NCBI GenBank assembly: GCA_051530055.1
Contig: CM121341.1
Location: 15,912,784 to 15,976,783 of the forward strand
Direction: 5' to 3'
Origin: Neoechinorhynchus agilis
Lineage: Eukaryota; Animalia; Acanthocephala
DNA: 64,000 bases
Shown here: positions 14,001 to 60,043 of the stretch, one piece after another
Position numbering within the stretch: position 1 is the stretch's first letter
How the letters are laid out: every line of letters begins with the position of its first letter
Position numbers and translations under genes: made by a program
Notes under the pieces: model-generated
What the model saw: the letters and a program-made list of their open reading frames with translations, nothing else
Told to the model about the DNA's origin: nothing
The model's database searches: none

Positions 14001-17000
14001 TTATGGACTGGCAAGTCCGGTAGCCATATATTTTTTCGTGTATGATCAGGCAAATCTGGAATCATATCGCTAATCCATTTCGTGTAATTTAGAATCGCTT
14101 TCGAATAATCTAGAGGATTTCGAGCCGTTCTGTAAAGAGTAAAAAGAGCATCGAACGAATCTCTATTTTTGAGTTTGTAGAAGCCATTAATTGCAACAGT
14201 GGTATTCACTGTAGGAGGCATGTAATCAGCAACCTTTTCTAAAGTATTGCGCAGGTTTTGACGACATTGTTTTGAACACCTTGAATAAGTAGGTAGAAAA
14301 TCTTCGATTTCTGAGAATGTCTTGTCACCAATATAAAGGGCTGTCGTTACTTCCTTTTCGTGTTCGTTAAGGTTATAAGGATTTAAAGACACGGGACACG
14401 TTGTAAGTTGAGCAATAAGAGTCATGAAAGATCTCACGTTGTTGTAATGGTTTGGCGACGAAAACTTTGTATCTCCAAACGTCCCATTATTGATTGATCT
14501 TACGAGAAATTCAGGATTTTGCAAATAATCGTACAGCAGTTTGAATCGGCGAAAAAACGTTAAAATGAGGTTTTCCGTAGGTAATCTGGAACATATAGCT
14601 CGAATTAGGAATCTGTCTTGGTCAATAGGTGCGCTAATATCAGGTGATTTGCTTCGAGTGTACTTTGAGCAATTCCATTTGATTGCAGGATTAAAAGGTT
14701 CCTCGGAAACGGCGCATTGGAGTTGAACTGGATGAGCTAAAATACGTTCCAAAAGGTGTATATCTACCTTCAATTCATCGAAAATCTGGCTAAGTGAAAG
14801 CTTGAAGTGTTCTTTTAAAACGAATATAAGATTAGATAATAGCCGGTGCAGTGGAAGATGGAATGTTAATGAAAAATCAAGAGCGTCGTTCGCTATGCCA
14901 ACGTTTTCATTTTCGAAGTCCATGAGATTGCAATTGAACCCTGCTTGCTTGCACCAATGGTCAATTCCTTTTAAGACTTGCGCGAGTGCGCTGATGATTT
15001 GCTTGATCTTTAGATTGTAATAAATCGATTCGAGCAATGTCTTAATGGGCTAATATGCAAAACCCCTTTATCAAAAGCGTTTCTTTGTCATAAATAAAAA
15101 CTAAAAATATTACTTCTTAGTTATGGCAAAAGACGTAAAAAATGAATTTGATGCACATGAAGTATTAGCAAATAAAGAATTTAAAGAGTTGTACCGATTT
15201 AAAACAAATGTGCTGGGCGAGTCCGCCCTTAAACCATGCGACGAATTGGTCGTCAAAAGATGCAGGCGGCCAGAGGCAACTGTAGTAAGACTTTCCTCCC
15301 AGGATAAAAATGGCTGTCCAGCGAGGGTCGTGATTTAAGCTGTGAAAAGAATTAAATTAATAAATTAGAAAAATAAAAATACTTGTTCAGACACCTTAAG
15401 AATAATTTAAAAGAAATTTTACGAACCTTAAAACTAAGAATCGATTTTGCAATTTTTCAACAAAAAAAGACATTCGCGAGTTTGACTTACTGACCGAAGG
15501 CTGTATGCTTAGAGCATCAACCCTTAATGTTTTTAGTATTGAAACGACAACTTCATCATTTAAGTGGAAACTCGTTTTCCAAGCCAATCTCTCAGCGACT
15601 GAGATTGTATTCGGTAAAGAATCATCAAGCTTCTTGAATCCACCGGTATAAATCATTCCTTGAAGATGCACTAAAATATCTACCCACATTGCGAAAAAAT
15701 TCTTTTGACCTATAAAAATTTCAGTTGCATTTGAGTCACCTAATACACATCTCAACTCCTTAAAGGTTTTCGATAACAGCAGCATTTGGGAGCAACTTGG
15801 ATTGAGTACCATTTGCAGAGGTTTTGTGAACAATGATCGACCATCATACCTGACTGTGGCCGGCACAAGGCAATTCTCGCATTCGATGAAGCATTCTTTG
15901 CAAGAGTATAAAATAACATTGAAAAGATCAATCAACATTTCCTTTTCCTTTATAATCGAGATATTAGAAAAAAGGATAAAACTGAACAAAGCCTTATTGT
16001 TTACAGCCTTTTCATCCAGAGTTTGTCTTAGAATTCGTTGAGCCAGTAAATACCACTTAATATATTCTCGAATAAGAGGAATCCTGATACATTTATACAT
16101 AGAAACCCCTACAAGTAGATGACTTAGGTTCTCTGGGAAACCCGTCCTACAGCTCCAGTAAATCAGTTCGCTCAAAATGTTCTCACATTTGAAAGGTTTA
16201 AGTTCTGGTAATCCTTCGATTTTGCACACTTCTAAAGAATGATCTCTTATTCGGTTGCAAGCAATATCTTCTATCTTTCTGTTTAACATTAAGCAAATGA
16301 TGGTACTTGCTAGCGATGAGCCGAGCCTTGAAATGTCTGATAATAAGCTGAGAATAAGATCGTTGAGCTCTAAACCATTTAAAATCTCATACGTTTCCCT
16401 TTCACATAGATACGTATTTTTGTACAGATCTATGACTATGAATCTCCACGGTTAAAAGACTTCATATTATAAGAATCAGTGAATTTTTAAAAGTCAACAA
16501 TGATGCATTCACTAATACGCCGAAACTGTCGCGCTCAGTCGACTAGAGCGACGTTTAATATTAAAGTTACATTTACTTACGATCATACCTAAAATATTGG
16601 GTAGCGAAGAAAACTTATCTCTAACAGAACTCGGGGGTGAGGTTTCGAACTATTAGCTTTTCTAGCCCCCATAAAGATCCATGAATGTATGATGTGAAGT
16701 AATTCTGGCTTAGCGAGAGATTCGCTCGAAAAACCAAGTTTAAATTTGTGCGTGAAAGTCGCTGGATACCATAATGGCATTGTTGATTCACCGAACTTCT
16801 GTACGTATCTAAAGACGGCGCTCTGCTGAAGAGATCGTATTTCCGATTTCTGTCGTTCATTCAAGTTCAACATGTTCATAATACGTAGATTTATAATTAT
16901 TACTTCAGCTAATTCTACTAAAATCGGTTTCATGGTCACCATAATCATTTCTAGTTCCTTAGAAGATAACCTATGTGCTTCATTTTTTCTTGAATGGAGA

Positions 17001-17548
17001 AAACAACTAAAATTGGCATTAAACTTTTCTCGGTCGCCGCATGAACATATTGTGTAGTCATCCATTTGCAAATATCTATAATCATGAAGAAAATGTCCGC
17101 CGTGCTCAAAGCAATTCCTGCAAAGAAAACCCTGACGCTTCGTCTCACATGAGCGACAGTTGAATGCCAAATTGTCAAACTTCAACACAGTACCACAAAT
17201 GCGATCCTTCGCTCCGATTCTAGTACACAACTTGTCAAATACCGTGAAAATATATTCTGCGTGGACCTTTATGTTTTGTTCCTCGGTGCAGAGGTTAGAG
17301 AACGCTGTATTTAACAGTAGACGATCATTGGAAAATTCCGATATGGCCCATCCGGAACATAGATAAGCTTCCAGAAGAGCGATTCGAGCAGTCAGTTGGC
17401 CGTAACAAAGAACTCTTTTCACGAGCTCATTCACCTTACTTACATCATACCCAATTGAACACAAGAACGCAAAATAAGACGGAGAGGCTAAACTCATCTC
17501 GTTTTTATCATCTGATGTGTTAACGTTTGTCCAATGAAAGTTTTTCAT
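11069..17548 (-). CDS. UBR3: UBR-box/RING E3 ubiquitin ligase, UBR3-like; predicted exons 17548-16688, 16430-15504, 15010-11069 (~1900 aa)
   Basis: UBR box (CGTVLKFDNLAFNCRSCE...LCRNCFEHGGH...CSCGD); UBR3-like LSELIYW...FPENL and LTFHLPLHR; RING-H2 CVICQ...CGHHVHLEC...CPMC; C-terminal LYIDINGEAD...LYLNKERF. The exon junctions are non-canonical (see findings) and the second is tentative. Confidence 0.85.
15011..15503 (-). other. Candidate non-canonical stem-loop intron in UBR3-like gene (boundaries tentative)
   Basis: End regions pair (minus strand CTCGCGAATGTCTT with AAGACATTGCTCGAA). The TA...TA join ATA|AAG is in frame; an alternative in-frame join (GTC AGT|TAC) also exists. Confidence 0.5.
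16431..16687 (-). other. Non-canonical TA-flanked stem-loop intron in UBR3-like gene (257 nt)
   Basis: TCATA direct repeat at both ends; 14-bp uninterrupted stem AUGGAUCUUUAUGG/CCGUGGAGAUUCAU set 5 nt in from each TA; the join gives ...LLHII|DLYKN... in frame. Confidence 0.7.
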
Positions 17549-17949: not shown

Positions 17950-18830
17950 CAGCATCTATCTTTGCTGAAGTTGTCTGGATGTCGGATGTTGAGGCAGGGA
18001 GGTGGGATTTACCTTTGGGGTTATACAGGAGAATGACAGATTAGGAGCCTTTCCTTGTTCTCCGGTTATTAAGGAAAGATTGGGCTTGAGGGAAGAAAGA
18101 TTTTTGGTAGAGGGTGGTATGAGCGAGGGGGGGATGAAAAAGGTTCGGGTTCCGGGTGTTTACTAGGGACGAGTATTTAGAGATGAGGGAAGAAAATTGT
18201 GGAGGGGGTTGAAGAAGACGGAGGGCGTTTTTGGAGAAAATGGAGTGGAGGTGGGCTTCGAGGGGAGGGAGTGAAGTCCCGCATATTCTCGCTGCTCTCT
18301 TGTGGAAGGTTTCGAGGGAATGTAGAGCATTGTCGGAAAGGGCGAGGAAAGTGGGTAGGCGTATGTAAGGATAGGGAGGGTGGCCGAGAGATAAAAGTGG
18401 GCAAGGTGTTCAGGGGATACGCCGAGACGCCGAAGGAGTTTGAGGAGGTAAAGACGAGGGTTTGCTTTAGAGAATGTAAATGAAATGTGGGCATCCCATT
18501 TAAGGTTTTCTTGTCGAATGTAAGATCAAGATTTTAGACAGAGAATATCCTTTTTCATACGCGATATTTCTACGAAGAACAAAGAATCAATGTTGAACCT
18601 GATAACAGAATTAATCTGTAAACGTAGGAATTAATGTCGATTTATGGGTTATTGATAATTGTAAAACCTGGCGATATGTTGATGACACGTTCTTCATCAT
18701 CGAAAATAACACAGATGTTAAAACGTTAAATGAACTGTTGGATTCGAGACACAGTAACATAAAATGGGCTGTAACAGAAGAAGAGAGTGAACAGTGAACC
18801 ATCAATTTCCTAGATGTTACTGCTAGTCGT
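17950..18830 (+). mobile_element. Decayed Penelope-like element fragments (endonuclease tail followed by an RT piece)
   Basis: WRYVDDTFFIIE...INFLDVT (PLE RT YVDD motif) at ~18670-18830; EHCRKG and GHPI...ILDRE remnants upstream; strongly G-rich at 17950-18480. Confidence 0.7.
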
Positions 18831-19039
18831 CGCCTACCTTCTTTACAAATGATAGAAACAAGCGTGTTCATACCGACGACACCGATGCTGTCTACTCGCT
18901 TCGCTCGGGAACGGCACGTTCCTCGCTTCGCTCGGAACCAGGATACTAGACAACAATATGAAGACGGAAACTTGTCGTCCAAAACGAGTCAAGTGAAAAG
19001 ACCAAGGAAACGCCCAATGTTATCGGGACACCAGGCCTA

Positions 19040-21170
19040 AATTCTGTTCATCAAATCACTGACGCAGACACCTTGAACGCGCCACTTTTCGATCGCACTC
19101 AATCTCAGAAGACCAACGCTGCCGGGCTCCCACGCGTCTCTACCGATGTGTGTTTGCGTTAAGTCTTTTAAATGAAGCAATTTGGGGGTTTTGTTTGCCC
19201 ATGGTCCCGGGATCTCCGCTGTAGCGGGTCTTGTTCTCCACCACAATCAACCGATCTGTTTATGCTTAAGACCTCTCAGATCACCACTGACTCTATTTCG
19301 ATACCTGATATCGTGCGGTTACTGCCCAAGAAAGTCCTGAAGCGGATCCAAAAGGGCGCACGATATCAGGTCGGAAAAGCATTTACGGGATTGCTCAACG
19401 ATTGCCTCCAAAAGAACTGTGCGCCATCATGGACACGGCTTTTCGCATTCCCGCTCTTAGTCTTTTGCACCAGTGATGATTCTGGGTGTCTTTGACATCA
19501 ACAATCAAGGAAAGGGTGGCCTCCTTCGAACAGATATTTAACAATTTCGAAATGAAATTTCGCGAGGTTCGTAAGGGACGCATGAAGGAAGGGTCTCGTT
19601 GCCGTTTTTCAAAACGATCACTGACTGAACGTGTCTCTTCGAAGCTTGCGGACGGGGTGCGACACTACAAATACTCCGGTCAAAACACCCACGCAGTAGT
19701 GGCAGTTTTGAAATCCCACCTCCTCCCATACAAGACAAGACACCCAATCAAATTTCAGAGCTAAAAAAGGCCATCTCATCTTTTGCAAATGGTTCGGGTC
19801 ATGGGCTTGACGAGCTAAGGCCTCAGCACCTAAAGGACATATATCCTTTACAACTGGTGAAGCCGCTCTCTCTTTAGAAAGTGCGCTTTCTCGGGTAGTC
19901 CACCGCCTGACTGGGGAGGACCTGAATCCCGTTGCAAAAGACCTATTTTTCGGAGCATCATTATGTGCCCTCACAAAAAAGAAGGTGGGATTCGTCCCAT
20001 CGCCGTATCTTCGACGATACGTCGACTAGCAGGAAAAATTCTCGGTAAAAGTAACACAGGGAAAACCGGGCAGCAACTTCGCCCAGTCCAACTGGGCTGC
20101 TGCACATTTTGCGAGGCGGAAGCTATTGTCCACGCGCTCCGAAACTTTACTACGAGGAGTTCAGAGCCGTGCGTGATTCTTAAGTGCGATTTTCAGAACG
20201 CCTTTAACTCTCTCAATAGCGAAAGCATGTTCTGCGCAATTAAGGATCACGCACCAGAAGCCTTCCAGCATTTTCTCAATTCCTACGGGACCGCGATTCT
20301 TTTGCTATTCGAAGACCACCTAATTTGGTCCGAACGAGGAGTGCAGCAAGGAGATCCTCTCGGTCCAATCGCAATCTCCCTAACGGTACATCCAATAGAG
20401 CACTCTCTCCATTCTAGCTTCAACGCTTGGTACTTGCATGGCGCTACGCGCGAAGATGATCCCTCCGTTGTACTGCGCGATTTGGAGACGCTAATTAGGG
20501 AGACCTCGAGAATGGGCATTGAGCTCAATGCTGGAAAGTGTGAGCTTCTAGTATTAAATATCGAAGACGCTGCCAAAGTCAAGGAGCTAATGGATGAGTT
20601 CGAGGCCGTAGCTCCAGGTCTGAAATTCGTGACTCCAGAGCAACTCAGCCTCCTGGGTAGTTGCGTCTTCGATTCAAATGTGGAAGATGAGATCGGCCAT
20701 ATCATACCGCAACTTTCGTTGCTGTGCGATAGGGTGTGTGCTCTCTCGGCTCATGAAGCCTTGTTTCTCATAAAGAACGCGCTCTTCATCCCCAAATTGT
20801 TATATAAGGTCCGCACGGCAACATTCTTCAAACATAAGGAAGGATTGGCCAAGCTCGACGACAAGGTGGGGGCTTGTCTAGAGCGTATTTTAATTGTCCA
20901 GCTCTCAGATGAGGCGCGGCGACAAGCTTCACTACCTGTGTCATCTGGGGGACTGGGCATTCGGGCGCTAGTAGACCTTGCCTTGCCAGCCTTTCTTGTT
21001 ACCAGTATCGAAGAAAATTCTGAGAGAAAAGTTTTGTCTTGACCAAGACTTTGTGGTGGCAGTTGAGGAATGGTGCCAACAGACAGGCGCTAACCATGTT
21101 CCCGTGAATGGCCTCAGACAGTCGATCTGGGATAGACCTCTCGTCGCGAGAGCTCACAGCTCTCTACTTT
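19040..21170 (+). mobile_element. CRE-clade non-LTR retrotransposon, frameshifted and 3'-truncated
   Basis: KKEGGIRPIAV, LKCDFQNAFNSL, GVQQGDPLGP and degraded WYLDD RT motifs; the 3' ~900 nt closely resembles the inverted copy at 34727-35640; ends abruptly at the PLE fragment. Confidence 0.9.
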
Positions 21171-21189
21171 CAGAAACCAAACTTAGCCC

Positions 21190-21800
21190 AGTTTTCTTCG
21201 CGTTGATCAACAAACACTCCGGATTCATATAAAATATTTGCAGCAGTGTCCCTGTTTCTGAGAGCTATAAAATATGCTCAACTTACATGTTAGGACAGGC
21301 TAAAATACGCTTGATTACTCAAGCTCGGGGAGCAATTGGCTATCCCGAATCGGCGATAGGAAGAGCTTTCCACAAGGCAAAGAACGTCGCAAATAGACAT
21401 GAGAAAATACTCCTGACATGTACTGGGAATGACAAGCCCAAATATATAGGGGTAAAATTTGTGGACAATGAAATTCGATCGAACCTAAGACGGGATTTTC
21501 GTGACCTGGACAAGACGATCATTTTGTATACTATAAAAGGGTGGCAACCTTGTAGGCATCCGTAAAAACAAGCCAAAATATGAGCACCATGAAGTGGTAT
21601 ATGAGGTCCACTTCAAAGACTGCCCATCAAAATATGTGGGACAGACCAAACAGGGACTTAGCAAAAGGAAATCACAGCACAGATATGTATGTAGGTGTTA
21701 TGACTCTTCTTCAGCCTTATCAATTCAAGCGGTGAATTGTGGACGTCAAATTGATCTGGATGACCCGAATGTGACTAGCACAAAGCCATAATTACGAAAT
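21190..21800 (+). mobile_element. Penelope-like element 3' fragment (GIY-YIG)
   Basis: VYEVHFKDCPSKYVGQTKQGLSKRKSQH...SSALS...GRQID: PLE GIY-YIG endonuclease motifs; frameshifted. Confidence 0.8.
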
Positions 21801-22159
21801 CGTTTGATGATGGGCCAGCATTAGTTTAAAATTGCCATTGAAAATGCAATGGTGCTCTGGCTCAAAGGTTCTAGTGGACCATGAGTCCAGGAACGGTAGT
21901 TTGACGAACATGCTTGCCCATTAAGTACTAGTCAACAGGATAACGTCATAATGTTTGTGTTTTAGATGACAGACCTTGGGAAATATCGGAATTATCCAAT
22001 GATATATCGGAGATAAATTAGTGAACTTAAATTTGGGGTGACAAAACTACCAAAAGAAAGTATCTTTTCCCGACGATAATAATCCAAGGTATAAAAAGAA
22101 AAATGGTTACATTGAATAGATGCGCAATTCGTATATGGAGACTAAAACTATAGTACTAA

Positions 22160-22355
22160 GATTTCATTCTTATCCTTTTCTTAAGAAAACCATTTTAAAG
22201 TCGTTTTAAAAGTCGATGAGGTAAAATGCTACTGATTTAAACGTCCAACAGATCGTTACGGTTTATGTAATCTTCATTTAACTTAAAATACACCGATAGG
22301 CAATTTTATCTTTATATATCTTTATTCTTAGAAAGCTTTGCAAAGTTGCTATTTT
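22160..22355. repeat. ~200-bp dispersed AT-rich repeat (second copy 26216-26410; mirrored at 56421-56615)
   Basis: Shared blocks TATCCTTTTCTTAA.AAAACCATTTTAAA, GATGAGGTA.AATGCTACTGATTT, TTTATGTAAT..TCATTTAACT.AAAATACA, AAGTTGCTATTT; diverged copies. Confidence 0.75.
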
Positions 22356-22409
22356 ATTACAATCTGCGAATTAAACTTCTCGGTATGATATTCCGGAAAA
22401 TTTTGTTGT

Positions 22410-22620
22410 CGATCCGTCGTGGTGCCCTCGGACCAAAAACAGCAGAATTCTTATCCAAGGTTTGAAAGTTTATGGCCGAAGCCAACTATTTTTTATGAGA
22501 GAATCAGCTGTGCAATTCAAAAAAGGAATGCCGGATGCATCCTCGAAGCAATGGAGGATAAAGGTGTTCCTTCGTTCACATCGGAACTTTTATAAATTGG
22601 AAAGATGGCTTGTAAAAGAA
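22410..22620 (+). mobile_element. 3' end fragment of a second CRE-like family
   Basis: GALGP...SQLFFMRESAVQFKKGMPDASSK remnant, similar to 49560-49690 and to the RLE C-terminus (FLRQNISLAVQRGNAA). Confidence 0.6.
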
Positions 22621-22786
22621 AATGAATATAATATCAATCAGTTGTTTCTATCTAGTATTTGTTGTTTGCTTCGTATTTAACATTGTTTGTATACATGGCA
22701 AATAGGCGAGCAAAAGATCCTAAGAATAAGGTACAATGTAATAAAAAGGTTGTTATTTTCGAATCACCTTCTCGTATACATTTTCG

Positions 22787-24537
22787 ATGCAATTTTTCCT
22801 TTTCGTTTCCCTAATCCTACACACATGGGCGCACAAGAGAGACTATGGTTTGCGTATGTGCATGGATCTTTTGGACGACGCTAATATTCTTCAGGATATT
22901 CAGTACTTGACTGGATATCGGATAGTTGACACTGGAAAGTTAACGTTCATTGGTTTTGGTAAAGAAAACGAAAACCGAAATCTCTTTTTGCGGCTAACCA
23001 AGTTGGAACTTCTTAAAGACATTCTATATGCCAAAAAGGTTGCATTTCAGTGGCCTATTATTAGAAAGAGAAGGCGGCCTTCAATTAGTGAAGCAACGAG
23101 TTTTTATTTTAATGATCCACTATGGCAGGAGCAATGGTACATGAATAAAAACTGTTCATTGGCTACTTTCATGGATATCGAAGGGGCATGGAATATGGGT
23201 TTTAGTGGCAAAGGAGTAAAAGTTGCAGTCTTAAGTTAGAAGTAGCTCAAAATGGGGTTTCTTTAAAGGAGCTATTTCTCATAGACGATGGGCTTGAGTA
23301 CACACATCCTGAGATTGAGAAGAACTATAGTCCAAATATTAGCTACGATTTCACTGAAGACGATGATGACCCTCTACCAAGGTTCACCCTTACGAATTTG
23401 AATCGGCACGGAACTCGTTGTGTTGGTCAGATTGTTGCCAAAGCGAATAACAGCCGCTGCTGTGTAGGGATTGCTCAGGACGTGCAGATTGGTATGCTGA
23501 AGGTCCTCGATGGTCCAAGTACGGACGCAAGCGAATCCCAAGCAGTTTCGTTTAAAAATGATGAAATCGATATTTACAGTTCGTCCTGGGGACCTGATGA
23601 TAATGGGGAGAAAGTAGATGGACCAGGATTACTTACGATTTCAGCCATGGTTAAAGGTGTTCAACATGGCCGGCAAGGCCGAGGCTCCATCTTTGTCTGG
23701 GCAGCAGGTAACGGAGGACGATACAATGACGATTGCAATTGTGACGGGTATTGCAACTCGCCTTTTTCTATCAGTGTGAACAGCATAAGTGAGAAATTCA
23801 TCGTTCCATCATACACTGAGTCTTGTGCAAGCGCGTTAACATCAACTTTTAGCAGCGACAGGGTTCACGACCGTCAAATTGTAACAACTGAACTCGGGGG
23901 AGGATGCACAATGCGCCACTCAGGAACATCCGCGTCGGCTCCAATTGTGGCGGCTGCCGTTGCTTTGGCTCTTGAAGCTAATCCAAGTCTGACATGGCGT
24001 GACGTTCAGCACTTGATAGTACATTCCTCCTTTCATGATCAAATTAAATCGAAGAATCGGCGTAAAAACGGTGCTGGCCATCATTTTGATGACGCGTGTG
24101 GTTTTGGACTGCTAAATGTCAAAGTGCTTGTTGCAAAGGCTCTCAATTGGAATAATGTGCCAGAAAGACATAGTTGTGCCGTGCTTGCTCATGTTAAACA
24201 TGTACGCATACCCGCGAACCGAACGGTCGTCGCTCGAATGAATACGAAATCATGTGATATGCTCAAAAGTCTTGAACATGTTGAAAGTGTTCTCACAATC
24301 GATAGTCAGCGAAGAGGACGGCTGAGCATTGTTTTAATGTCACCAATGGGCACGAGAAGCAAATTGTTAAGGAAGCGACTTCATGATATGTCCAATTCCG
24401 GCTATTACAACTGGCCTTTTACTTCTGTTCAGTTCTGGGGAGAAAATCCTACTGGAGAATGGACAATCGAGATTCATAACGAAGATCATAGCGACGCATT
24501 TTTTACTCAGTGGCTTACCGTGTTCCATGGATTTTAA
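22787..24537 (+). CDS. Furin/kexin-family proprotein convertase (signal peptide, prodomain ending RKRR, S8 catalytic domain, P domain; no Cys-rich or TM tail); exons 22787-23233 and 23284-24537, 566 aa
   Basis: VLDDGLEY (after non-canonical splice), HGTRC, WGPDDNG, AAGNGG, HSGTSASAP, LTWRDVQH; P domain LEHVES...RRGRL...SPMGTRS...FWGENPTGEW. Confidence 0.92.
23234..23283 (+). other. 50-nt hairpin intervening sequence splitting the catalytic Asp codon region
   Basis: TA|AGTTAGAAGTAGCTC...GAGCTATTTCTCATA|GAC with an 11-bp stem. The TA join gives VLDDG; the only GT-AG join gives VLNDG. Confidence 0.7.
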
Positions 24538-24857
24538 ACAGTTAACATTAAAATTTATTTATTCTTTATTGTTCGGTATGGAGATATCAAAGATTAGTAT
24601 AAACCTCTGAACCAGTAAAAACTACCACCGAAAATTCATGTCAAAAAAACAAAAATACACATTAATCGTATAGATGATATGGCTGACCAACAAATATCGC
24701 CCGGCAAATAAATTCAAGGGTGCAGCTTCTCATCATTATTTTTGTCGAGCCGTGAAAAGGACTACGAAGTTACACGATTTATGTTAGTTGCTGGATGGCG
24801 ATTTTGATTAAGTCTACTATTTATCCCATTACTTTGCCTTGAGAAGCTAAGTTGAAT

Positions 24858-26157
24858 TTATTTTCGTTCGCGGCAAATAAGTTTATGAATTGCCCAATGG
24901 TTCTTCTGACAAGAAATGTCGCAATATTGAGCAATTTTACACCGTCCGCATTTTTGTAATGTTTCAACTACTGCACCACATGATGAGCACTGAACTGTTT
25001 TTTGGTTAAATTCAAGATTGTGCGAAAACAGCAACGAACACTGTTCAAGAACATTTCCTAGCCGCCCACATGAATCCTTCGAAAGGTAAAGTTGACATGC
25101 AGATGAAGCGATTTCTTTCCAATCAACGTTCTTTGTGATTTGCTCGAGTATTCGCTTGCTGCAATCAACGATCAGGAACGGTTTTAAATTGCACGACGTA
25201 GGTGATATAAGACTTAACTCTAATATAAAGCGCTTCAAATGCTCTAGAAAGGGTAGCTGATCCAGTAAATATTGATTTAAGTGGTGATTGCACGCCTTTT
25301 GAAGACTTTCAATGCGCACGACATCTAAAGGGTATTTTTGAAGAAAATCCGAGGAGGTGACCAGGGAAAAGAGTGCCATCCAGCACTGAGCTTCAATTTT
25401 GTTTATTCTGTGTGGATTATACGGACGCCAGTTTCCATCAATATACTCCTTTACCTCCTTCGTATCCTTATTTACGCCTATCCAGACCTTTTGATCTAGT
25501 GCTCTTAGGATTAGCATGGGGAAGTCAAAATCAACCAGCATCTTATTAATAGCTGCAACACCTATTTGACGTAAATTCTGTGTGAGACATCCCATAATTG
25601 TAAGTGCCTTTATTTTTCTTAATTTTCTGAACTTTTTAAGTTGTCTCAAAATCTCTTGAAGCATACGAGGCACACTCTTAGGTACATCGTTGACGATGAG
25701 ACATCGGTGGCAATAGTCGATTAGATCGACTGAAGACTCGTTCAGTGATTTAAATGGAGATACTCATTAAAAGAAGACATTTGAGTGCCTCTCGATTAAC
25801 ATTTTCGGCGTGGAATAGGATTGTTTCCAACAGGTTTGCAAGAATGCATTCGTAGTAGAAGGAAACAGCGAGAACCGTGATTGTTTCCGGATATATTTGA
25901 TGGGAAATCATTGAACCAAACACATGAACACGCCATACTTCTGCAGTTATTAGTTCATGGAGTAGAATTTCCATTCGTGCTTCAAGGACCAATGATACGT
26001 TATCCAACGAAGATCCGGACTTCGCGATGCATACTGCCTCATTGGTGGTCTTTAAAATGACAACAAACTGCTTAAACCAAGCTTCTGATCCAAATTCCGA
26101 GATGCGAAACTGTCGGATGGAGTGAAGTTCTTCATCTAACAATTTAATAGGAATCAT
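24858..26157 (-). CDS. ZMYND10: Zinc finger MYND domain protein 10 (BLU; axonemal dynein assembly factor), copy 1; exons 26157-25797 and 25750-24858, 417 aa
   Basis: FRISEFGSEAW, LLHELITAEVW, LANLLETILFH, VDLIDYCHR, KIEAQCWMAL, LLDQLPFL and a C-terminal MYND finger CSSC...CGRC..AQYCDISCQKNHWAIHKLIC. Confidence 0.92.
25751..25796 (-). other. 46-nt TTAA-flanked hairpin intervening sequence in ZMYND10 copy 1
   Basis: Mirror of 57035-57080; no GT-AG solution of plausible size; removal restores the frame. Confidence 0.75.
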
Positions 26158-26689
26158 GTGGCAATGTATTTAAGGTCGATACAACATCAGTTGCCAATGG
26201 TTGCTATGGTACTTAGAGATTTTATTTCTATCCTTTTCTTAAAAAACCATTTTAAAAACGTCTTAAGAGTAGATGAGGTAGAATGCTACTGATTTCAAAG
26301 TCAAGCAAATCGCTGTCGTTTATGTAATGCTCATTTAACTAAAAATACATGGATAACCAATTTTAGCTTTATACATCTTAATTCATAGGAAGCTTTACCA
26401 AGTTGCTATTTAATCATAATAAATGAATACTAAAATAAAGTTTTACATTGTGATACGGACATGCAAAGTGGCACCAGAAAGCGTTTGCTAATGTCAATGG
26501 AACCATAATGTTGATCGTTAATACCTTTATTATCAATGTCTGAAAAATTAACGATGACCCAACTCGACTTTGAAGGCGAAAGTCAATAATTGATGGATAT
26601 GAGAAGACATACAATGATGTGGATGATTTCCTAATGTTCAAAGTCTTTATCTCCCATTTATTCAAATAAATCATTCAAACCTAATCATC

Positions 26690-27260
26690 GTATGTGGTTC
26701 TGATGTGGATGAATTTGGAATACATGGCCTTCTTTGCGAAAATCAAGAGGACATATAGCAAGACACGCGGAGCTCAACGCAATAATAGGCAGAGCCCTCA
26801 ACTCGATACACGTACGGACCATCCTGGAGTCCAATCATCTTTGTCGCTCGAATGGAAAGCGTCCCGACGGAATAACAATTTTCCCATGGAAACAGGGTAA
26901 GTGTTTGATTTGGGATGCGACGTTTATCGACTCGCTCGCACCCTCCAATCGACAAGATGCCATGACTGGACCTGGAGGTGCTGCGACGGCGACTAAAAGG
27001 AAGAAAGCAGCAAAGCATGCTAAATTGCAGCAACATAACCAGTTCCTTCCTTTCGGCGTGGAAGCCCAAGGGGCCTTGGGATCGGCAGCCAGCAAATTCT
27101 CCAAAGAACTTGGCCGCCTCTTAACTGCCGCCAAAGGAGATCGCAGGGAACATAGCTTCCTCATTGAGAGGATCAGCCTCGCGATCCAAAGAGGCAACGC
27201 AGCAAGCGTTCGAGGAACGACAAAATGAGATCCAGTAAAAACAATTTATTTAATAAAATT
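26690..27260 (+). mobile_element. 5'-truncated CRE-clade retrotransposon (CCHC knuckle + RLE)
   Basis: CGSDVDEFGIHGLLC...RHAELN...NGKRPDGITIFPWKQGKCLIWDATF...SLAIQRGNAAS. Confidence 0.9.
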
Positions 27261-50254: not shown

Positions 50255-52329
50255 TCACTTTGCATTGGGGGAAAACAATCGCATTTGAGTGCGCTTCTCA
50301 ATCATTGCATGCGTTTCATACTCCAACATTATTACATTCGTGCTTGCTTTACGGGCACAATTAAATTCTATGAAAAACACCGAGGTTTTTACATGAAAAC
50401 CCATAAATTAATGTATTGATACAATCAGTAATCTTCGAATTGAGCGCTCAGTTGATGTAGACTAGTAAATCTTGAAATCTTGCTATAAATTCCGATTGTA
50501 TGATGGTATAGAATGTTCCTCATTCTATAAAAAATTCTTAGCTCATTATTGATCTTACAAGATAAATTATCGCAATAAAAAATAGAGAGATATCATCAGG
50601 TGCCGAAAATTGTAATATTTTGCTATTTCGTGGAATTTGTTTCGTTCGCTTTCAGATATCTGTGCGTTTTTTAACGCTATAGATTTAAGTCAACAAATTT
50701 ACATCGGTGAAGTTGTGAAGAAAAACACCAATTCTACTTTAAAGTAAAATAACTTAGAGTGAAAAATTTATATCAAAAATTGTTTAGGGTGATTGGCCAA
50801 CACTTACGACCCCGGTGTGCTTTTTGGTTAATAATTCTTTAAAATGGAGTAGAATAATTATGTCGGTTAAAAATATTGATGATCGCAATTGACGAAAGCT
50901 TCCAGCAACCGGAGGCAATGAAATACGTCCCATTTGTTCCATAATTGTCACGCTCACTCCGGGCGCCTAATCTTACTTGGAGGTCGTCGACCGTCATCCA
51001 CACCGGATCCCTCATCCACCTCTCCGGATCCGCCATCAACTCTAAAGTGATCACGAGGACCCAGAGGTACATGGGCCCTCTTTTTAAACTAAATAAATGA
51101 AACGTGTTGTTGAAATATCGGCCTAATCGTTATAAGCTTTAACAGCAGTAGTCTCTATTATAGCGCTGAGGAAATTTCTCTGTCAAAAGAATTGGATGGA
51201 ACACATATGCTCGTCAATCATCAAAGTATCCTTGTATCCAGCGGCCTACATTGAATTCAAAAAATATCACAATGAATTATACAAGACCGTTCCTTTAACT
51301 GTAACATTCGCGAGTAAACTATGTGTCCAACGCTCCATGTACATTCAGGAGATCTCAATTAAATATAGAAGGCAGAGCTTGTCCGTGAATTAACACGAAG
51401 AAAACTCTTGTTTAGGAAAACATCGGAGTTTGTGTTTATTTGCGAAGCTCAACAATTAAGACGAATAATTCGCCACTTTTCATGGGCGGAAACATCAGTG
51501 CCTTTAAACACAGTAAACTAATCGTAATCCCAATTCATTTCATCGTCCAACAACCTACCCACCTCATTTTTCCATGCTGCCTTATCTTCTCGGATACAAT
51601 CAACCGAGATGAAAATGAGGAAGGACCCAACCTCACAAACTCTCCTCGACGCGAAGAATAAACCACTTCTCCCACCCAACCGAAACCGTAATCCACTCTA
51701 TAATCAACAACCGCATTAATTGAACAAATCAGAAATCAAGTTTTTATAAGGACCCAAAGGTATCCCTGTTTGTCTGTTACTGGTCAAACGTAATACCATC
51801 GGTGTTTTTCACATCCCAAACATAGAACTGCTCTAATGTGCCATTTGATACATTAAGTGGTTGTCTCTACTTCTGAGGTAAATTCAGCGGCGAATAAATT
51901 AACATGAATAATCGCAATTGGATGATTCAGTACTAGGTACGTTCAATTCTGCCATCCAACAATAATCCCTATTTGTCTGTTACTGGTCAAACTGTTGGAG
52001 TAGCCGGGTTTCATGAAAAAACCATCGGTGTTACGCATGCAATGATTGAGAAGCGCACTCAAATGCGATTGTTTTTTCCAATGCAAAGTGAATGTCAGCA
52101 TTGAATCGATCGTGTCTACTTGCGAGAACAAGGTTTTTGCTCGTTTCAGAATTTACCCACAGTGATGTAAATTTCGAGATGTCAAAAAGGGGAAAGTTCC
52201 AGAGTATCCAAGAGATCGCAGGAATCTCGAAACAGTTTACAGGGAATGCAGACAAAGGAGTGACGACGTCATTCACGCGATCGATGATTACTACACTCAG
52301 CGGCGTCCCCTGTTGAACAGCGGAGAATT

Positions 52330-53630
52330 TTATCTCAATGGCTGTGAGCGTGGCGTCCTAGAGAAGGCATTTTCCTTCTCGCCACGAGAATACTGTGACA
52401 CCGTCCGGTCTATGGCCATCGAGTCGGCAAAGATTGCTCGGCTCTAGGATGTTGGCCCCATTCACAGTATTCAGCGCACGACTAAGAATTGCATTCACTT
52501 CGGTGTGTCGTGAGTACCTTCCGCCTGATTGCAGACTGGCGATACCATGGCGTCTCGATGGTTCCACGGTCGCTTTGCAACTGCAGCGATGCGATGTGCA
52601 CATCGGTACCCCAAGTCTCAGGGACACTGCAGTCCTAACTGTCTCGTTCGGAGAGAAGGGTACCCACAGAAGCGACTGGGATAACGTTGAGCCAAGCACC
52701 CGATTCTCTTGTAGAGACTGCAGCCAATGGAGTTTGGTTCACCAGATCACGAGACTCTGAAATTAAGGAGTTATGAATTCTCGCTACCAGGATTGAATCC
52801 CAATCTGATTGTTTGCAATCATTGATGGAGACCTGCTAGCTACCAGAATCCTCCCACGAAAGATTAAGAGCCTCGACGAAATCGACCTCAAAAGGGTTAA
52901 TTCTCGCAAAGAAAAGACTAAATTATTTTGCGGCTTGCTTCATACGATCACAAGTAATCTGGAAGGTAAATATCGGCTGCTTTGCGGATACTCAAACCGC
53001 CGGGCGGCACAGGCAAGGACGCTTGACGCCATGCCTCGTCCGACAGCTGAGTATTTAAAATGTTCTCGAGAGAGGCTTTCACCGTCTCGTACAATTTTGC
53101 CGGTTCTGTGGCAGCTTATACAGCAATTTTGGAATGAAGAGGGTGTTCTTGATCAGGAACAGAGCCTCGTGTGAAGATAATTCATCAACTCGTTCGCACA
53201 GTACCGAAAGTTGCGGTTGAAGATTGGCAATCTTTGCTTAACATTAGAACCAAAAATGCAGTTATTAGAAGACTCAGCCGGTCTAGGGTGATAAATTCTA
53301 TCCCGTGGGATAGGTCCTGAAAATCTTTCACGATAGTTTGCCTGGTCCTTCCACGTTCGTCACTAAAGTCTCGCATTTCGTAGCATTGAATTCAATGCCA
53401 ATTTTCGTAGTCTTCTTCATGGGTGTCTTCAAATAAACTACTCTTTCTTATTACAAAATGTGGTTATTGAACAGCAAGGGAGTTGAAGTCTTATAGGCAT
53501 TGACAAAATGGTGAAATGCTTCTGGTGCGTGATATCCAACTACTTCGAGCAAATCTGCTCGGTAAACTCCGTTGAATGCATTTTTAAAATTTCAAAAATG
53601 CAATGTTTCTTTTTAACTTTCCCGTTACTA
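52330..53630 (-). mobile_element. Decayed CRE-clade element, same subfamily as 36500-38240
   Basis: Antisense ORFs mirror those at 37093-37488 and 37755-38207; CTSHRCSC and RLDGHRPDGV motifs. Confidence 0.85.
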
Positions 53631-53679
53631 AATCAAAGAAATGATGAACAAAAAAGAATAAATTGATAATGTTTTTGAA

Positions 53680-55106
53680 TCACTTGATTTTGGTTCTGAT
53701 TTCGTTCAGAATTGCTCGCAGTTTCATCGACAGTTTCTTATTTTGTTCGATTTCATCACTTAACGTTTTAAGAGATTTTCGCATTTTATCGACATCCAGA
53801 TTTAGAACAAGCTCGTTTACGAGATGATCGACATCTTCACAAAGATTCTTTTGAGAATCAATAAGGAGTGCAACGCGGTCCAAGTGCATCTTTGAGGAGT
53901 CTGTTAATTTAAAATTCTGGCTAAATCCTTTATTGAGTTCAAAATGATCTTTACTTCTCAAATCAGCAAGACTAAGACTTCGATCAATTATATGCACCTG
54001 GTTTGACTTTTTGAGTCCCACTAAAAATCGCTGAATCAGCAACATTTTGTCTTGAACGAATCGACGAGAAAAGAATGACGTATTTCGGGTCGCCTGAGAT
54101 TTAAGCATTTCAATTGGCTCGGGCTCGTGTTTCAGAAGTTCGGAAAGGCTTTGTTCGCTAAGCTTCTGATTAGATTTTATTCCATTTACTAAGGTTTGCA
54201 GATCTTGACCTGTCATGTCCGTCTTATTGCAAGATTCACTTTTATCGAAATTTTTTACATTTTCAAATAAATTTCCAATTTCAACCATTTGCTCAGTCAC
54301 CCTATCTGTGATTGCCCCAAATGCTTCTAATTGATTTGATTGGGGAAACGAATCGCTTTGTTGTTCACAGTGTTCTTTAGAAGTGATTATTGATAAGGAA
54401 ATATGGAAATACGATTTCTGATAGAATTGGTATTCTTTGAGCTAAAAGTCATCGAGGAATAAAATGAAAAACGTTTTTTATAATGACTGACAGAGTAATA
54501 AAGTGTCAAGGATCGGTGAGAAAAGCAATTTGAATCTTATTTAAAAGAATCGATTTGACTTTAAAGGTGGATGATTTTCGCAAGGATTTACGGAACAAAG
54601 CAAAAATTCAGAATTCAGATCAAGCTTGTAATTTGTTTAGTAAATTCGGAATGAATATTAAAAAATGTTAGAAGTTATATATGAAAGGCAACTAAAAAAG
54701 AGCACTGTAATTCCATTTGAAAGTCGTTTCCTTTCCAATCGATTAAAATCTTCTCAAGTCTCTCGTTTCTCAATTTCAATCGTTTGAGAATACCGTTATA
54801 GGCAATACATTCGGCTATATTTTGTTCCATATCAATATTCGGCGCTGTTATTGATTGAAGATCAATGATTGCTCCATTCCACTCGCCTTTGTACAAGCGA
54901 TCAACTATGTAATCTTGAGAATACTTCTTTGTCTCGCAAATCGAAATGAGATGACGAATGACGTTCATGAGAAGATGGTCCCGTGTGATCGATCGGAAAT
55001 CAAAAGATTGAAGAAATCGAATAGCATTATCCAGTAGAGTTTTGTCGCCTTCCAACGATAAATTAACAAGACGTTTTTGAATGTTTGTTTGAGATTCCCC
55101 AGGCAT
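53680..55106 (-). CDS. Unidentified coiled-coil protein, two or more exons
   Basis: ORFs 54675-55142 (ATG at 55106) and 53680-54300 (open upstream to ~54441) on the same strand with protein-like composition; junction unresolved. Confidence 0.55.
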
Positions 55107-56673: not shown

Positions 56674-57973
56674 ATGATTCCTATTAAATTGTTAGATGAA
56701 GAACTTCACTCCATCCGACAGTTTCGCATCTCGGAATTTGGATCAGAAGCTTGGTTTAAGCAGTTTGTTGTCATTTTAAAGACCACCAATGAGGCAGTAT
56801 GCATCGCGAAGTCCGGATCTTCGTTGGATAACGTATCATTGGTCCTTGAAGCACGAATGGAAATTCTACTCCATGAACTAATAACTGCAGAAGTATGGCG
56901 TGTTCATGTGTTTGGTTCAATGATTTCCCATCAAATATATCCGGAAACAATCACGGTTCTCGCTGTTTCCTTCTACTACGAATGCATTCTTGCAAACCTG
57001 TTGGAAACAATCCTATTCCACGCCGAAAATGTTAATCGAGAGGCACTCAAATGTCTTCTTTTAATGAGTATCTCCATTTAAATCACTGAACGAGTCTTCA
57101 GTCGATCTAATCGACTATTGCCACCGATGTCTCATCGTCAACGATGTACCTAAGAGTGTGCCTCGTATGCTTCAAGAGATTTTGAGACAACTTAAAAAGT
57201 TCAGAAAATTAAGAAAAATAAAGGCACTTACAATTATGGGATGTCTCACACAGAATTTACGTCAAATAGGTGTTGCAGCTATTAATAAGATGCTGGTTGA
57301 TTTTGACTTCCCCATGCTAATCCTAAGAGCACTAGATCAAAAGGTCTGGATAGGCGTAAATAAGGATACGAAGGAGGTAAAGGAGTATATTGATGGAAAC
57401 TGGCGTCCGTATAATCCACACAGAATAAACAAAATTGAAGCTCAGTGCTGGATGGCACTCTTTTCCCTGGTCACCTCCTCGGATTTTCTTCAAAAATACC
57501 CTTTAGATGTCGTGCGCATTGAAAGTCTTCAAAAGGCGTGCAATCACCACTTAAATCAATATTTACTGGATCAGCTACCCTTTCTAGAGCATTTGAAGCG
57601 CTTTATATTAGAGTTAAGTCTTATATCACCTACGTCGTGCAATTTAAAACCGTTCCTGATCGTTGATTGCAGCAAGCGAATACTCGAGCAAATCACAAAG
57701 AACGTTGATTGGAAAGAAATCGCTTCATCTGCATGTCAACTTTACCTTTCGAAGGATTCATGTGGGCGGCTAGGAAATGTTCTTGAACAGTGTTCGTTAC
57801 TGTTTTCGCACAATCTTGAATTTAACCAAAAAACAGTTCAGTGCTCATCATGTGGTGCAGTAGTTGAAACATTACAAAAATGCGGACGGTGTAAAATTGC
57901 TCAATATTGCGACATTTCTTGTCAGAAGAACCATTGGGCAATTCATAAACTTATTTGCCGCGAACGAAAATAA
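56674..57973 (+). CDS. ZMYND10: ZMYND10 copy 2; exons 56674-57034 and 57081-57973
   Basis: Translations identical to copy 1. Confidence 0.92.
57035..57080 (+). other. 46-nt TTAA-flanked hairpin intervening sequence in ZMYND10 copy 2
   Basis: GTTAA TCGA GAGGCACTCA...TGAGTATCTC CAT TTAA ATCA; the join gives HAENVKSLNESSVDLIDYCHR. Confidence 0.75.
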
Positions 57974-58293
57974 ATTCAACTTAGCTTCTCAAGGCAAAGT
58001 AATGGGATAAATAGTAGACTTAATCAAAATCGCCATCCAGCAACTAACATAAATCGTGTAACTTCGTAGTCCTTTTCACGGCTCGACAAAAATAATGATG
58101 AGAAGCTGCACCCTTGAATTTATTTGCCGGGCGATATTTGTTGGTCAGCCATATCATCTATACGATTAATGTGTATTTTTGTTTTTTTGACATGAATTTT
58201 CGGTGGTAGTTTTTACTGGTTCAGAGGTTTATACTAATCTTTGATATCTCCATACCGAACAATAAAGAATAAATAAATTTTAATGTTAACTGT

Positions 58294-60043
58294 TTAAAAT
58301 CCATGGAACACGGTAAGCCACTGAGTAAAAAATGCGTCGCTATGATCTTCGTTATGAATCTCGATTGTCCATTCTCCAGTAGGATTTTCTCCCCAGAACT
58401 GAACAGAAGTAAAAGGCCAGTTGTAATAGCCGGAATTGGACATATCATGAAGTCGCTTCCTTAACAATTTGCTTCTCGTGCCCATTGGTGACATTAAAAC
58501 AATGCTCAGCCGTCCTCTTCGCTGACTATCGATTGTGAGAACACTTTCAACATGTTCAAGACTTTTGAGCATATCACATGATTTCGTATTCATTCGAGCG
58601 ACGACCGTTCGGTTCGCGGGTATGCGTACATGTTTAACATGAGCAAGCACGGCACAACTATGTCTTTCTGGCACATTATTCCAATTGAGAGCCTTTGCAA
58701 CAAGCACTTTGACATTTAGCAGTCCAAAACCACACGCGTCATCAAAATGATGGCCAGCACCGTTTTTACGCCGATTCTTCGATTTAATTTGATCATGAAA
58801 GGAGGAATGTACTATCAAGTGCTGAACGTCACGCCATGTCAGACTTGGATTAGCTTCAAGAGCCAAAGCAACGGCAGCCGCCACAATTGGAGCCGACGCG
58901 GATGTTCCTGAGTGGCGCATTGTGCATCCTCCCCCGAGTTCAGTTGTTACAATTTGACGGTCGTGAACCCTGTCGCTGCTAAAAGTTGATGTTAACGCGC
59001 TTGCACAAGACTCAGTGTATGATGGAACGATGAATTTCTCACTTATGCTGTTCACACTGATAGAAAAAGGCGAGTTGCAATACCCGTCACAATTGCAATC
59101 GTCATTGTATCGTCCTCCGTTACCTGCTGCCCAGACAAAGATGGAGCCTCGGCCTTGCCGGCCATGTTGAACACCTTTAACCATGGCTGAAATCGTAAGT
59201 AATCCTGGTCCATCTACTTTCTCCCCATTATCATCAGGTCCCCAGGACGAACTGTAAATATCGATTTCATCATTTTTAAACGAAACTGCTTGGGATTCGC
59301 TTGCGTCCGTACTTGGACCATCGAGGACCTTCAGCATACCAATCTGCACGTCCTGAGCAATCCCTACACAGCAGCGGCTGTTATTCGCTTTGGCAACAAT
59401 CTGACCAACACAACGAGTTCCGTGCCGATTCAAATTCGTAAGGGTGAACCTTGGTAGAGGGTCATCATCGTCTTCAGTGAAATCGTAGCTAATATTTGGA
59501 CTATAGTTCTTCTCAATCTCAGGATGTGTGTACTCAAGCCCATCGTCTATGAGAAATAGCTCCTTTAAAGAAACCCCATTTTGAGCTACTTCTAACTTAA
59601 GACTGCAACTTTTACTCCTTTGCCACTAAAACCCATATTCCATGCCCCTTCGATATCCATGAAAGTAGCCAATGAACAGTTTTTATTCATGTACCATTGC
59701 TCCTGCCATAGTGGATCATTAAAATAAAAACTCGTTGCTTCACTAATTGAAGGCCGCCTTCTCTTTCCAATAATAGGCCACTGAAATGCAACCTTTTGGC
59801 ATATAGAATGTCTTTAAGAAGTTCCAACTTGGTTAGCCGCAAAAAGAGATTTCGGTTTTCGTTTTCTTTACCAAAACCAATGAACGTTAACTTTCCAGTG
59901 TCAACTATCCGATATCCAGTCAAGTACTGAATATCCTGAAGAATATTAGCGTCGTCCAAAAGATCCATGCACATACGCAAACCATAGTCTCTCTTGTGCG
60001 CCCATGTGTGTAGGATTAGGGAAACGAAAAGGAAAAATTGCAT
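58294..60043 (-). pseudogene. Convertase copy 2 with a 1-nt deletion (A5 to A4 in GCCAAAAAGG, near 59795) frameshifting the prodomain
   Basis: The 5' ORF diverges after LYAK and ends at 118 aa vs 150 aa in copy 1; the catalytic exon translation is identical. Could be a homopolymer sequencing error. Confidence 0.65.

Follow-up and report, generated by a model that had tools for sequence, protein, structure and literature searches.

Interrupted genes at the locus

We analysed a 64,000-nt stretch of the genome of the acanthocephalan Neoechinorhynchus agilis (CM121341.1 of assembly GCA_051530055.1, approximately 15.91-15.98 Mb; hereafter the window), in which five conserved genes are interrupted by inserts without GT..AG ends. 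The interrupted genes encode a UBR3-like protein, a furin-type convertase, ZMYND10, an LCMT2/TYW4-like protein and CLUH (Table 1), and the window also holds genes for a dynein light chain, AGFG1, a Boule-like protein with an RNA recognition motif (RRM), a homeobox protein and CKS1. The convertase and ZMYND10 lie together in a segment that recurs in inverted orientation with 99.56% identity over 5.2 kb. A CLUH query from the window retrieves ACOME3_003798 of N. agilis at 97% identity, followed by Pomphorhynchus laevis at 33% and then by rotifers; no N. agilis protein derived from transcripts figured among the matches. A public annotated locus (L001) is identical to positions 32705-57610 of the window, and a second locus (L003), 3.5 Mb away on the same chromosome, holds a paralogue of the convertase and a Cys-loop receptor gene. 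Pools of about 50 whole worms, together with whole females, supplied the DNA that was assembled.

The first-pass annotation of the window had listed nine inserts. Seven of them (50, 46, 257, 401, 531, 160 and 334 nt) stand exactly as proposed, whereas one of 569 nt in CLUH was wrongly delimited and one of about 493 nt in the UBR3-like gene is an ordinary intron. The listed region had ended at 59597 because the inverted duplication carries a mirror copy of the convertase insert. In the register used here an insert begins after the first TA and ends with the second TA. Terminal complementarity is the RNAduplex energy between the first and the last 22 nt, compared with that of equal-length random genomic segments. 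At four sites in the window (the DDG motif of the convertase, ZMYND10, and CLUH inserts 2 and 3) homology fixes the junction. As canonical controls we took seven introns, each verified either by its strong signals or by exact homology: three from LCMT2, three from the Cys-loop receptor gene and one from UBR3.

Table 1. Positions of the interrupted genes, inserts and ordinary introns in window coordinates; a slash marks a junction.
Feature	Position	Strand	Length (nt)	Ends	Remarks
UBR3-like gene	17548-11072	-			
Convertase and ZMYND10 genes	within 22409-27623			segment recurs inverted at 60422-55208	
LCMT2/TYW4-like gene		-			predicted non-canonical junctions ATCGTTGGTA/GTAGTATCG and CACTCTCTA/ACATACATG
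CLUH gene	42705-47610	+			predicted non-canonical junctions CCTCGATA/GACAGCTC (or ACT alternative), GGCGGTTATA/GAGTTACCGTC, GTCAGGCGTTA/TTCGGGCCTAAC; annotated GT-AG junction CHEI/NKEQDK
Convertase insert	23234-23283	+	50	TA repeat 23232-33 and 23282-83; 10-bp stem 23239-48 with 23269-78	predicted junction GTTGCAGTCTTA/GACGATGGGCTT; annotated GT-AG junction GTCTTAA/ACGATGG (Asn); junction codon AAC, against GAC with the TA junction
Convertase insert, mirror copy	59548-59597	-	50		identical sequence, in the 5.2-kb inverted duplication
Convertase paralogue insert (L003)			102	T only	predicted junction ATAGCGATTGTG/GATGACGGAATC
ZMYND10 insert	25796-25751	-	46	TTAA repeat 25799-96 and 25753-50	predicted junction CGAAAATGTTA/AATCACTGAACG; annotated GT-AG junction REALK/FDLIDY
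ZMYND10 insert, mirror copy	57035-57080	+	46		identical sequence
CLUH insert 1, candidate	43266-43912	+	647	TAG repeat 43264-66 and 43911-13	terminal duplex -14.0 kcal/mol
CLUH insert 1, rival candidate	43243-43889	+	647	ACT repeat	weak stem
CLUH insert 2	44793-44952	+	160	ATA repeat 44790-92 and 44950-52	
CLUH insert 3	46773-47106	+	334	TA repeat 46771-72 and 47105-06	TPR segment
UBR3-like insert	16687-16431	-	257	TCATA repeat 16692-88 and 16435-31	predicted junction CTTCACATCATA/GATCTGTAC
LCMT2 insert	32328-31798	-	531	TA repeat	
LCMT2 insert	30479-30079	-	401	TAA repeat	
UBR3-like GT-AG intron	15494-15050	-	445	G/GTCAGTAAGT...CATATTAG/C (3' end also given as GCATATTAG)	in frame, as in annotation P0121
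LCMT2 GT-AG intron	31605-31512	-	94		
LCMT2 GT-AG intron	31347-31184	-	164	GTAAGT..AATAG	
LCMT2 GT-AG intron	30867-30824	-	44	GTTAGC..TTTCAG	
AGFG1 GT-AG intron	7255-7299	+	45	CT/GTAGGT...TTTTAG/G	gives CSGVL-RGLIPPHR

Junctions fixed by homology or assigned by structure

Removal of the 50-nt insert from the convertase gives GKGVKVAVLDDGLEYTHPE, with VAVLDDGLE, which aligns to furin without gaps and keeps the catalytic Asp. A GT-AG pair of the same length (GT at 23235, AG at 23284) is also in frame and gives VLNDG, with Asn replacing the catalytic Asp, and the public model P0122 carries this Asn. The DDG motif is kept in P. laevis, in a metagenomic relative with 56% identity, in furin and kexin, and in all convertase homologues compared. 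The terminal duplex of the insert has an energy of -16.0 kcal/mol (P = 0.0065). Translational bypassing of the T4 gene 60 type, with its 50-nt gap, stem and nearby stop, was considered for this site and rejected, because the codons for take-off and landing differ from each other, and inserts elsewhere are as long as 650 nt.

The convertase paralogue (ACOME3_002884, model P0129) carries a 102-nt insert at the same codon. Its two flanks share one frame and leave exactly 102 nt to be removed, and it has no in-frame canonical pair at all, the GT (9700)..AG (9805) pair of L003 spanning 106 nt and being out of frame; BRAKER splits this gene in two. The terminal duplex is again stable (-14.9 kcal/mol, P = 0.0105). 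The two paralogues are about 40% diverged in protein, with every catalytic residue kept and the flanking exons intact. Their exon flanks are 69% identical and their inserts are unalignable, keeping similar ends (AG..GAAG... and ...TTCTC..ATA) around inner stem sequences that differ (GAAG+TAGCTC/GAGCTA in the window, GAAG+GCCTTT/AAAGGC in the paralogue). This comparison, a sample of one in which the paralogue has lost the TA repeat, suggests a stem that is maintained and a repeat that is no more than a historical footprint. Every N. agilis convertase copy seen carries the insert, and the P. laevis orthologues of convertase and CLUH are intronless; the insert positions are therefore lineage-specific.

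In ZMYND10, removal of 46 nt gives HAENVKSLNESSVDLIDY, which fits the fixed 18-residue segment LFH-x6-L-x-[DE]-x3-DLIDYC of 20 homologues and retains the conserved Leu and the acidic residue. The canonical solutions do not fit: the 49-nt GT-AG intron of annotation P0242 leaves a product one residue short, and a 34-nt solution leaves one that is four residues too long. The terminal duplex of this insert is -10.1 kcal/mol (P = 0.083).

CLUH contains three inserts. Removal of insert 2 joins GGT TAT to AGA GTT ACC and restores DYGGY/RVTVQS (DYGGY/RVTVQSIIPGIL), which is the invariant motif DY.GYRV..QS. Every in-frame GT/GC-AG pair at this site deletes or replaces conserved residues of the motif, and the annotation reads through 23 unconserved codons and skips RVTVQSIIPGILD. 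Its terminal duplex reaches -19.4 kcal/mol (P = 0.001), and the z-score of its minimum free energy is -3.0. For insert 3, among three variants, the 334-nt removal alone aligns gapless to 15 homologues; with the annotated GT-AG intron of 286 nt the product gains 16 residues, and a variant of 361 nt, bounded by the 7-nt direct repeat TATGCGG (46737 and 47098), deletes nine aligned residues and has no stem. A variant of equal length, at a GCG repeat 6 nt upstream, is also possible for this insert. An 18-nt inverted repeat nearby (46763 with 47120) was rejected as a boundary, as it would take out the conserved FGPNAPQTG. The terminal duplex of insert 3 is -12.9 kcal/mol (P = 0.02).

For CLUH insert 1 the spacing in homologues (28-30 residues) sets the removal length at 644-647 nt, and two candidates of equal length are given in Table 1. 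Excision of 569 nt, as first proposed, would leave about 56 residues, some 27 too many, and the two 569-nt candidates have no terminal pairing (-3 and -4 kcal/mol). A 620-nt in-frame removal at a 17-nt inverted repeat with TA flanks (43250-66 with 43848-64) gives a product eight residues too long and loses LMQES, which aligns to P. laevis. Only one N. agilis CLUH appears among the matches listed, and none that is insert-free.

The remaining inserts are assigned mainly by structure. The 257-nt UBR3-like insert is in frame and ranks first by terminal duplex among 117 TA-TA pairs (-18.3 kcal/mol, 14 bp, P = 0.0015), with a 251-nt variant ending at 16437 equally possible. In the UBR3 splice variants scanned, no Pfam domain extends across the junction, which leaves this insert without a homology constraint. 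A 13-nt inverted repeat in the same gene (16700 and 16471) was rejected, as its use leaves an in-frame TAA. The 531-nt LCMT2 insert is the top-ranked TA-TA pair and is in frame (-13.9 kcal/mol, P = 0.012); it is the weakest case, with in-frame GT-AG alternatives and loose homology. We regard the UBR3-like 257-nt (or 251-nt) and LCMT2 531-nt inserts as tentative assignments for which structure is the sole basis. Removal of the 401-nt LCMT2 insert is in frame and gives PPNRHSHSL/TYMNNRLYLIGG, with a Kelch spacing of 18 residues from Arg through GG, compared with products five or six residues longer from the canonical alternatives (terminal duplex -15.5 kcal/mol, P = 0.0055).

At none of the four homology-fixed sites in the window does a GT-AG pair reproduce the conserved protein, which removal of the insert with one repeat copy does restore; the original proposal was that such removal restores the frame and, where the homologue was known, the motif spacing. 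Among random junction pairs in the window, 1.5% have a direct repeat with TA in it, or 4% when a slide of 3 nt in either direction is allowed. Such a repeat is present at four of four homology-fixed sites, at all eight retained window sites, and at eight of nine sites when the paralogue is counted; the first-pass annotation had counted it in eight of its own nine. The chance of four in four is approximately 0.04^4, or 3e-6, and somewhat weaker if CLUH insert 3 is allowed an ambiguity of 6 nt either way.

Complementary ends had also been claimed for every insert. The claim fails for the 569-nt CLUH and ~493-nt UBR3 candidates, which show no or weak pairing, and holds for four homology-fixed inserts taken together (window convertase, its paralogue, ZMYND10 and CLUH insert 2), whose duplex energies range from -10.1 to -19.4 kcal/mol with P between 0.001 and 0.083 (p = 7.6e-6 by Fisher's combined test). 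The seven GT-AG controls range from -1.4 to -8.1 kcal/mol (P between 0.18 and 0.96). The non-canonical and canonical energies do not overlap (p = 0.0003 by the Mann-Whitney test), a comparison that is biased in that three of the non-canonical boundaries were picked partly by their stems. When TA-TA pairs are ranked by stem energy with the frame ignored, the in-frame solution is first or tied first at 5 of 9 junctions and second at three more, and it is absent from the ranking at the junction reclassified as canonical.

In all nine inserts the stem, of 10-18 bp, starts 0-5 nt inside the 5' end and finishes 1-7 nt short of the 3' end. Insert lengths run from 46 to 647 nt and GC contents from 30 to 40%, and the inserts share no sequence with one another, bearing out the earlier remark that they have little in common. 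None has GT..AG in any of its 2-6 equivalent registers, and there is no common terminal dinucleotide. None lies inside a listed long open reading frame or matches an identified protein family. The flanking exons are stop-free, as the first-pass annotation had pointed out, for up to 1,326 codons.

Proposed origin and removal of the inserts

The anatomy of the inserts recalls several known systems. In the larvacean Fritillaria borealis, non-canonical introns are reported to have terminal inverted repeats and target-site duplications and to derive from miniature inverted-repeat transposable elements (MITEs) (PMC11282704); they depend on the U2 spliceosome, with a duplication of U2AF and m6A changes in small nuclear RNAs (Henriet et al. 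2019; Soo et al. 2026, PMC13326754). As in this animal, the N. agilis junctions, here predicted from homology, ignore GT-AG, occupy lineage-specific positions, combine terminal inverted repeats with target-site duplications and coexist with canonical introns. The statement in the first-pass annotation that it knew of no such pattern in an animal was thus too strong. The two cases differ in that less than 10% of Fritillaria introns are GT-AG, compared with about half in our small sample, and in that N. agilis belongs to another phylum (Gnathifera, Spiralia). The Fritillaria termini AG/AC and AG/AT, with YAY before the 5' site and at the 3' end, are absent as a class in N. agilis: YAY occurs on both sides in 1 of 9 inserts (UBR3_AB) and at the 3' end only in four others, and AG/AC or AG/AT with YAY in none. 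The kind of intron is therefore already known, the closest animal case being F. borealis, and what is new here is the lineage, Acanthocephala, together with the lack of the Fritillaria AG/AY and YAY signature.

Introner elements of Amoebophrya, which with those of F. borealis come closest to the inserts, have no dinucleotide consensus, inverted repeats of 8-20 nt and direct repeats of 3-5 nt over the boundaries (Farhat et al. 2021, PMC7789003). The N. agilis inserts are likewise bounded by non-canonical borders, hairpin-forming end repeats and direct repeats that overlap the boundaries, and both hosts are parasites. Amoebophrya is, however, a protist (a dinoflagellate) with elements in repeated families and an incomplete U1, and the direct repeats of N. 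agilis are 2-5 nt long and nearly always contain TA. Nonconventional introns of euglenids resemble the inserts in their non-canonical junctions, pairing that joins the ends, repeats like target-site duplications and conventional introns alongside, but euglenids belong to another kingdom, their introns are excised as circles, and the euglenid pairing of CAG at +4-6 with CTG at -8 to -6 occurs in none of the nine inserts in any register. The internal eliminated sequences (IESs) of Paramecium have TA at both ends, leave one TA behind, interrupt coding sequence and are of Tc1/mariner-like origin. TA stands at both boundaries in 8 of 9 inserts, the paralogue having T only; Paramecium IESs are nevertheless removed from the DNA of the somatic nucleus and have the end consensus TAYAGYNR, and the N. 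agilis inserts show neither sign. Canonical introners (Micromonas, Aureococcus; Huff 2016; Gozashti 2022, PMC9860276) are also DNA-transposon insertions turned introns, with target-site duplications and terminal inverted repeats, but their splicing is conventional, at GT-AG sites that the elements bring with them or create. That survey (PMC9860276) reports introners in two animal groups only and does not mention Acanthocephala, and in the literature searched we found no link between Acanthocephala or rotifers and non-canonical introns or introners.

We propose that the inserts are probably old MITE insertions of the Stowaway/Tc1-mariner type in coding exons, which would be removed exactly from pre-mRNA as non-GT-AG introns. 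Like such MITEs, they have a TA target-site duplication, terminal inverted repeats and no coding capacity. The origin from TA-targeting MITEs had been suggested in the first-pass annotation, and the anatomy fits it: a repeat with TA in it, inverted repeats of 10-18 bp close to the ends, lineage-specific positions and the lack of a shared core. Elements that duplicate TA would have entered coding exons of N. agilis; each would be excised from the pre-mRNA together with one copy of its repeat, restoring the original reading frame; and the paired ends may bring the two cut sites together. By analogy with F. borealis the enzyme could be a U2-type spliceosome with relaxed site choice, which is the weakest step of the proposal. 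The stop-free exons and the insert shared by diverged paralogues that keep every catalytic residue indicate that the inserts have long been compatible with function, and so must be removed.

Several observations weigh against this explanation. Stems of -15 kcal/mol or below with TA flanks are not more frequent in the window than in shuffled sequences (301 compared with 304-324). The first-pass annotation had asked for shuffled-sequence controls: against random junctions and genomic segments the TA repeats and the homology-fixed stems come out above expectation, and against shuffles the window-wide stems do not; structure alone can neither find nor prove inserts, and the structure-defined ones (UBR3 257, LCMT2 531 and 401) are individually weaker for it. 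A search of 85 kb (the window and L003, about 0.1% of the genome) turned up no second copy for any of the inserts, and the window contains no DNA transposase, so that a MITE origin is argued from target-site duplications and terminal inverted repeats alone. The paralogue insert has no TA repeat. Acanthocephalan proteins evolve fast, and arguments from spacing are not absolute. Finally, in-frame GT/GC-AG pairs exist at eight sites, and BRAKER chose such pairs; in the convertase the pair A/GTTAGA...TTCTCATAG/A has decent splice signals, and GTTAG is a genuine 5' splice site in the 44-nt LCMT2 intron, so that a canonical convertase intron is not unreasonable on signal.

This last point is also the strength of the view that the annotation is right and all sites are ordinary GT-AG introns, the proteins truly carrying substitutions and indels that include Asn at the catalytic Asp, all the more as BRAKER selected the pairs when given RNA-seq hints. 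We consider this very unlikely. The paralogue, split in two by BRAKER, offers no in-frame canonical pair; the canonical models drop conserved in-frame codons (RVTVQSIIPGILD, GY/R) and add unconserved ones; and this view leaves unexplained the TA repeats and the stems, features missing from real GT-AG introns. Moreover, if the TA junction were the true one, an aligner would still settle on the canonical junction in the convertase and accept a single mismatch. Scarcely credible is the notion that nothing is removed and that the inserts disrupt decaying genes or a single haplotype. The region is full of retroelement debris, 1 nt is deleted from the right-hand copy of the convertase and a nearby LCMT2 fragment is a pseudogene, but the exons remain stop-free up to 1,326 codons, five genes within 64 kb would need to hold eight inserts that are each a null allele, the convertase insert is common to paralogues that have kept all catalytic residues through about 40% protein divergence, and no insert-free N. 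agilis CLUH is among the matches listed.

If the inserts are removed, this could happen at the level of DNA or of RNA. An IES-like system, raised as an alternative from the start, would have a domesticated transposase excise the inserts from somatic DNA at their TA boundaries, the assembly representing the germline version. TA boundaries with terminal inverted repeats resemble Paramecium IESs, and precise removal of the element plus one TA is typical of such systems. Removal from RNA is favoured because the assembly, which draws on whole worms (about 50 to a pool) and whole females, retains all inserts; the insert termini show no apparent TAYAGYNR-type consensus, no report of DNA elimination in Acanthocephala was found in the literature searched, and there is no transposase nearby in the window, which together make elimination highly improbable. 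Within RNA, a structure-specific endonuclease might cut at the base of the hairpin and an RtcB-type ligase join the exons, as suspected for euglenids. The lack of any GT..AG register, of a common terminal dinucleotide and of a common YAY signature would suit such a mechanism, as would the position of the stems close to both ends in all nine inserts and the paralogue that keeps the stem but not the TA repeat. We nevertheless hold it to be unlikely: no bulge-helix-bulge or XBP1-like motif was evident on inspection by eye, the insert lengths span 46 to about 650 nt, and the sole animal precedent uses the U2 spliceosome (PMC13326754). It is similarly doubtful that a bilaterian outside the tunicates has independently evolved a stem-guided excision of transposon relics with hairpin ends and TA flanks from mRNA without splice dinucleotides, whether through an endonuclease and ligase or through a spliceosome that reads structure.

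Should transcripts confirm the junctions of the proposed MITE-derived introns, Acanthocephala would be the second animal lineage, and the first among protostomes, with many transposon-derived introns that ignore GT-AG, and would serve as an independent replicate for asking how splicing comes to tolerate them. Canonical and non-canonical introns that are adjacent in the same genes would be convenient for experiments. Default spliced aligners of the HISAT2/STAR type would hide the signal by preferring a canonical junction with one mismatch. In practical terms, the public models misrender the convertase (Asp to Asn) and CLUH (a conserved motif lost) and split one gene in two. Claims of gene loss in acanthocephalans lean partly on such data, and the N. 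agilis genome paper, which used BRAKER2 for annotation and never uses the word "intron", gives a metazoan BUSCO completeness of 47% for the genome (PMC12690905). If excision is indeed guided by stems, part of the "massive gene loss" of acanthocephalans would be an annotation artefact.

Ordinary introns, gene models and repeats

Ordinary GT-AG introns without stems coexist with the non-canonical inserts in the same genes, in roughly equal numbers. Their coexistence had been recorded at the outset and extends to one intron in AGFG1, three in LCMT2, one in UBR3 and three in the Cys-loop receptor gene, one of which restores PDLTLINNADGQY. The three LCMT2 introns have no terminal pairing (P = 0.39-0.56), and the 445-nt UBR3 intron pairs at -8.1 kcal/mol (P = 0.18). 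The latter replaces the ~493-nt insert first proposed at this position, keeping 13 more open codons than the ~493-nt version, which pairs weakly (-7.1 kcal/mol). Judged by homology, the BRAKER models P0001, P0121, P0122, P0129 and P0242 are wrong at every predicted non-canonical site; the public UBR3 model skips about 130 open codons.

Three further junctions can be noted. In the Cys-loop receptor the junction at the third transmembrane segment (TM3) is ambiguous. Use of a canonical intron of 279 nt, which has a strong poly-T/AAG acceptor, puts six extra residues into TM3 relative to structures of nicotinic acetylcholine receptors, whose exact spacing is given by an AA-flanked 297-nt removal (L003 13795-14091; -11.2 kcal/mol, P = 0.05) that is not counted here. 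In UBR3 exon B (~16100-16050) the annotation removes an in-frame, stop-free stretch of 51 nt (GTAAGT...ATAAAG) encoding VSMYKCIRIPLIREYIK, plausibly either a short canonical intron or a retained coding segment. In the Boule-like RRM gene (28466-28900) the RNP2-RNP1 spacing points to an in-frame intervening stretch of 42 nt (YVFSEKLLEFNIVF) directly before RYAFVTFES, which is probably a short canonical intron.

The inverted duplication, whether a genuine palindromic segmental duplication or a product of misassembly, extends inward (27657-29994 and 50881-53740) at 85-97% identity. This inward part runs into a decayed copy of the LCMT2 3' exon that has lost 70 nt and gained a GC-rich stretch of about 110 nt, and in the right-hand copy convertase exon 1 has a 1-nt deletion (23033 compared with 59798). 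The convertase-ZMYND10 pair is flanked by a dispersed repeat of about 220 nt (22148-22370 and 26204-26425, plus mirror copies; 83% identity) without terminal inverted repeats; neither it nor the decayed LCMT2 copy provides empty-site information. Rfam gave zero matches in the window or L003. GC-rich (46-51%) fragments of the reverse transcriptase (RVT_1) of a retroelement lie at 18000-22000, 34000-38000, 52000-54000 and 26713-27225, in several diverged copies that are 86-89% identical. The intergenic positions 2586-2770 hold a foldback (palindromic) element, nearly perfect and about 175 nt long, TAAATGAAATTAAG...CTTAATTTCATTTA, and its inner arms form a duplex of -36.6 kcal/mol.

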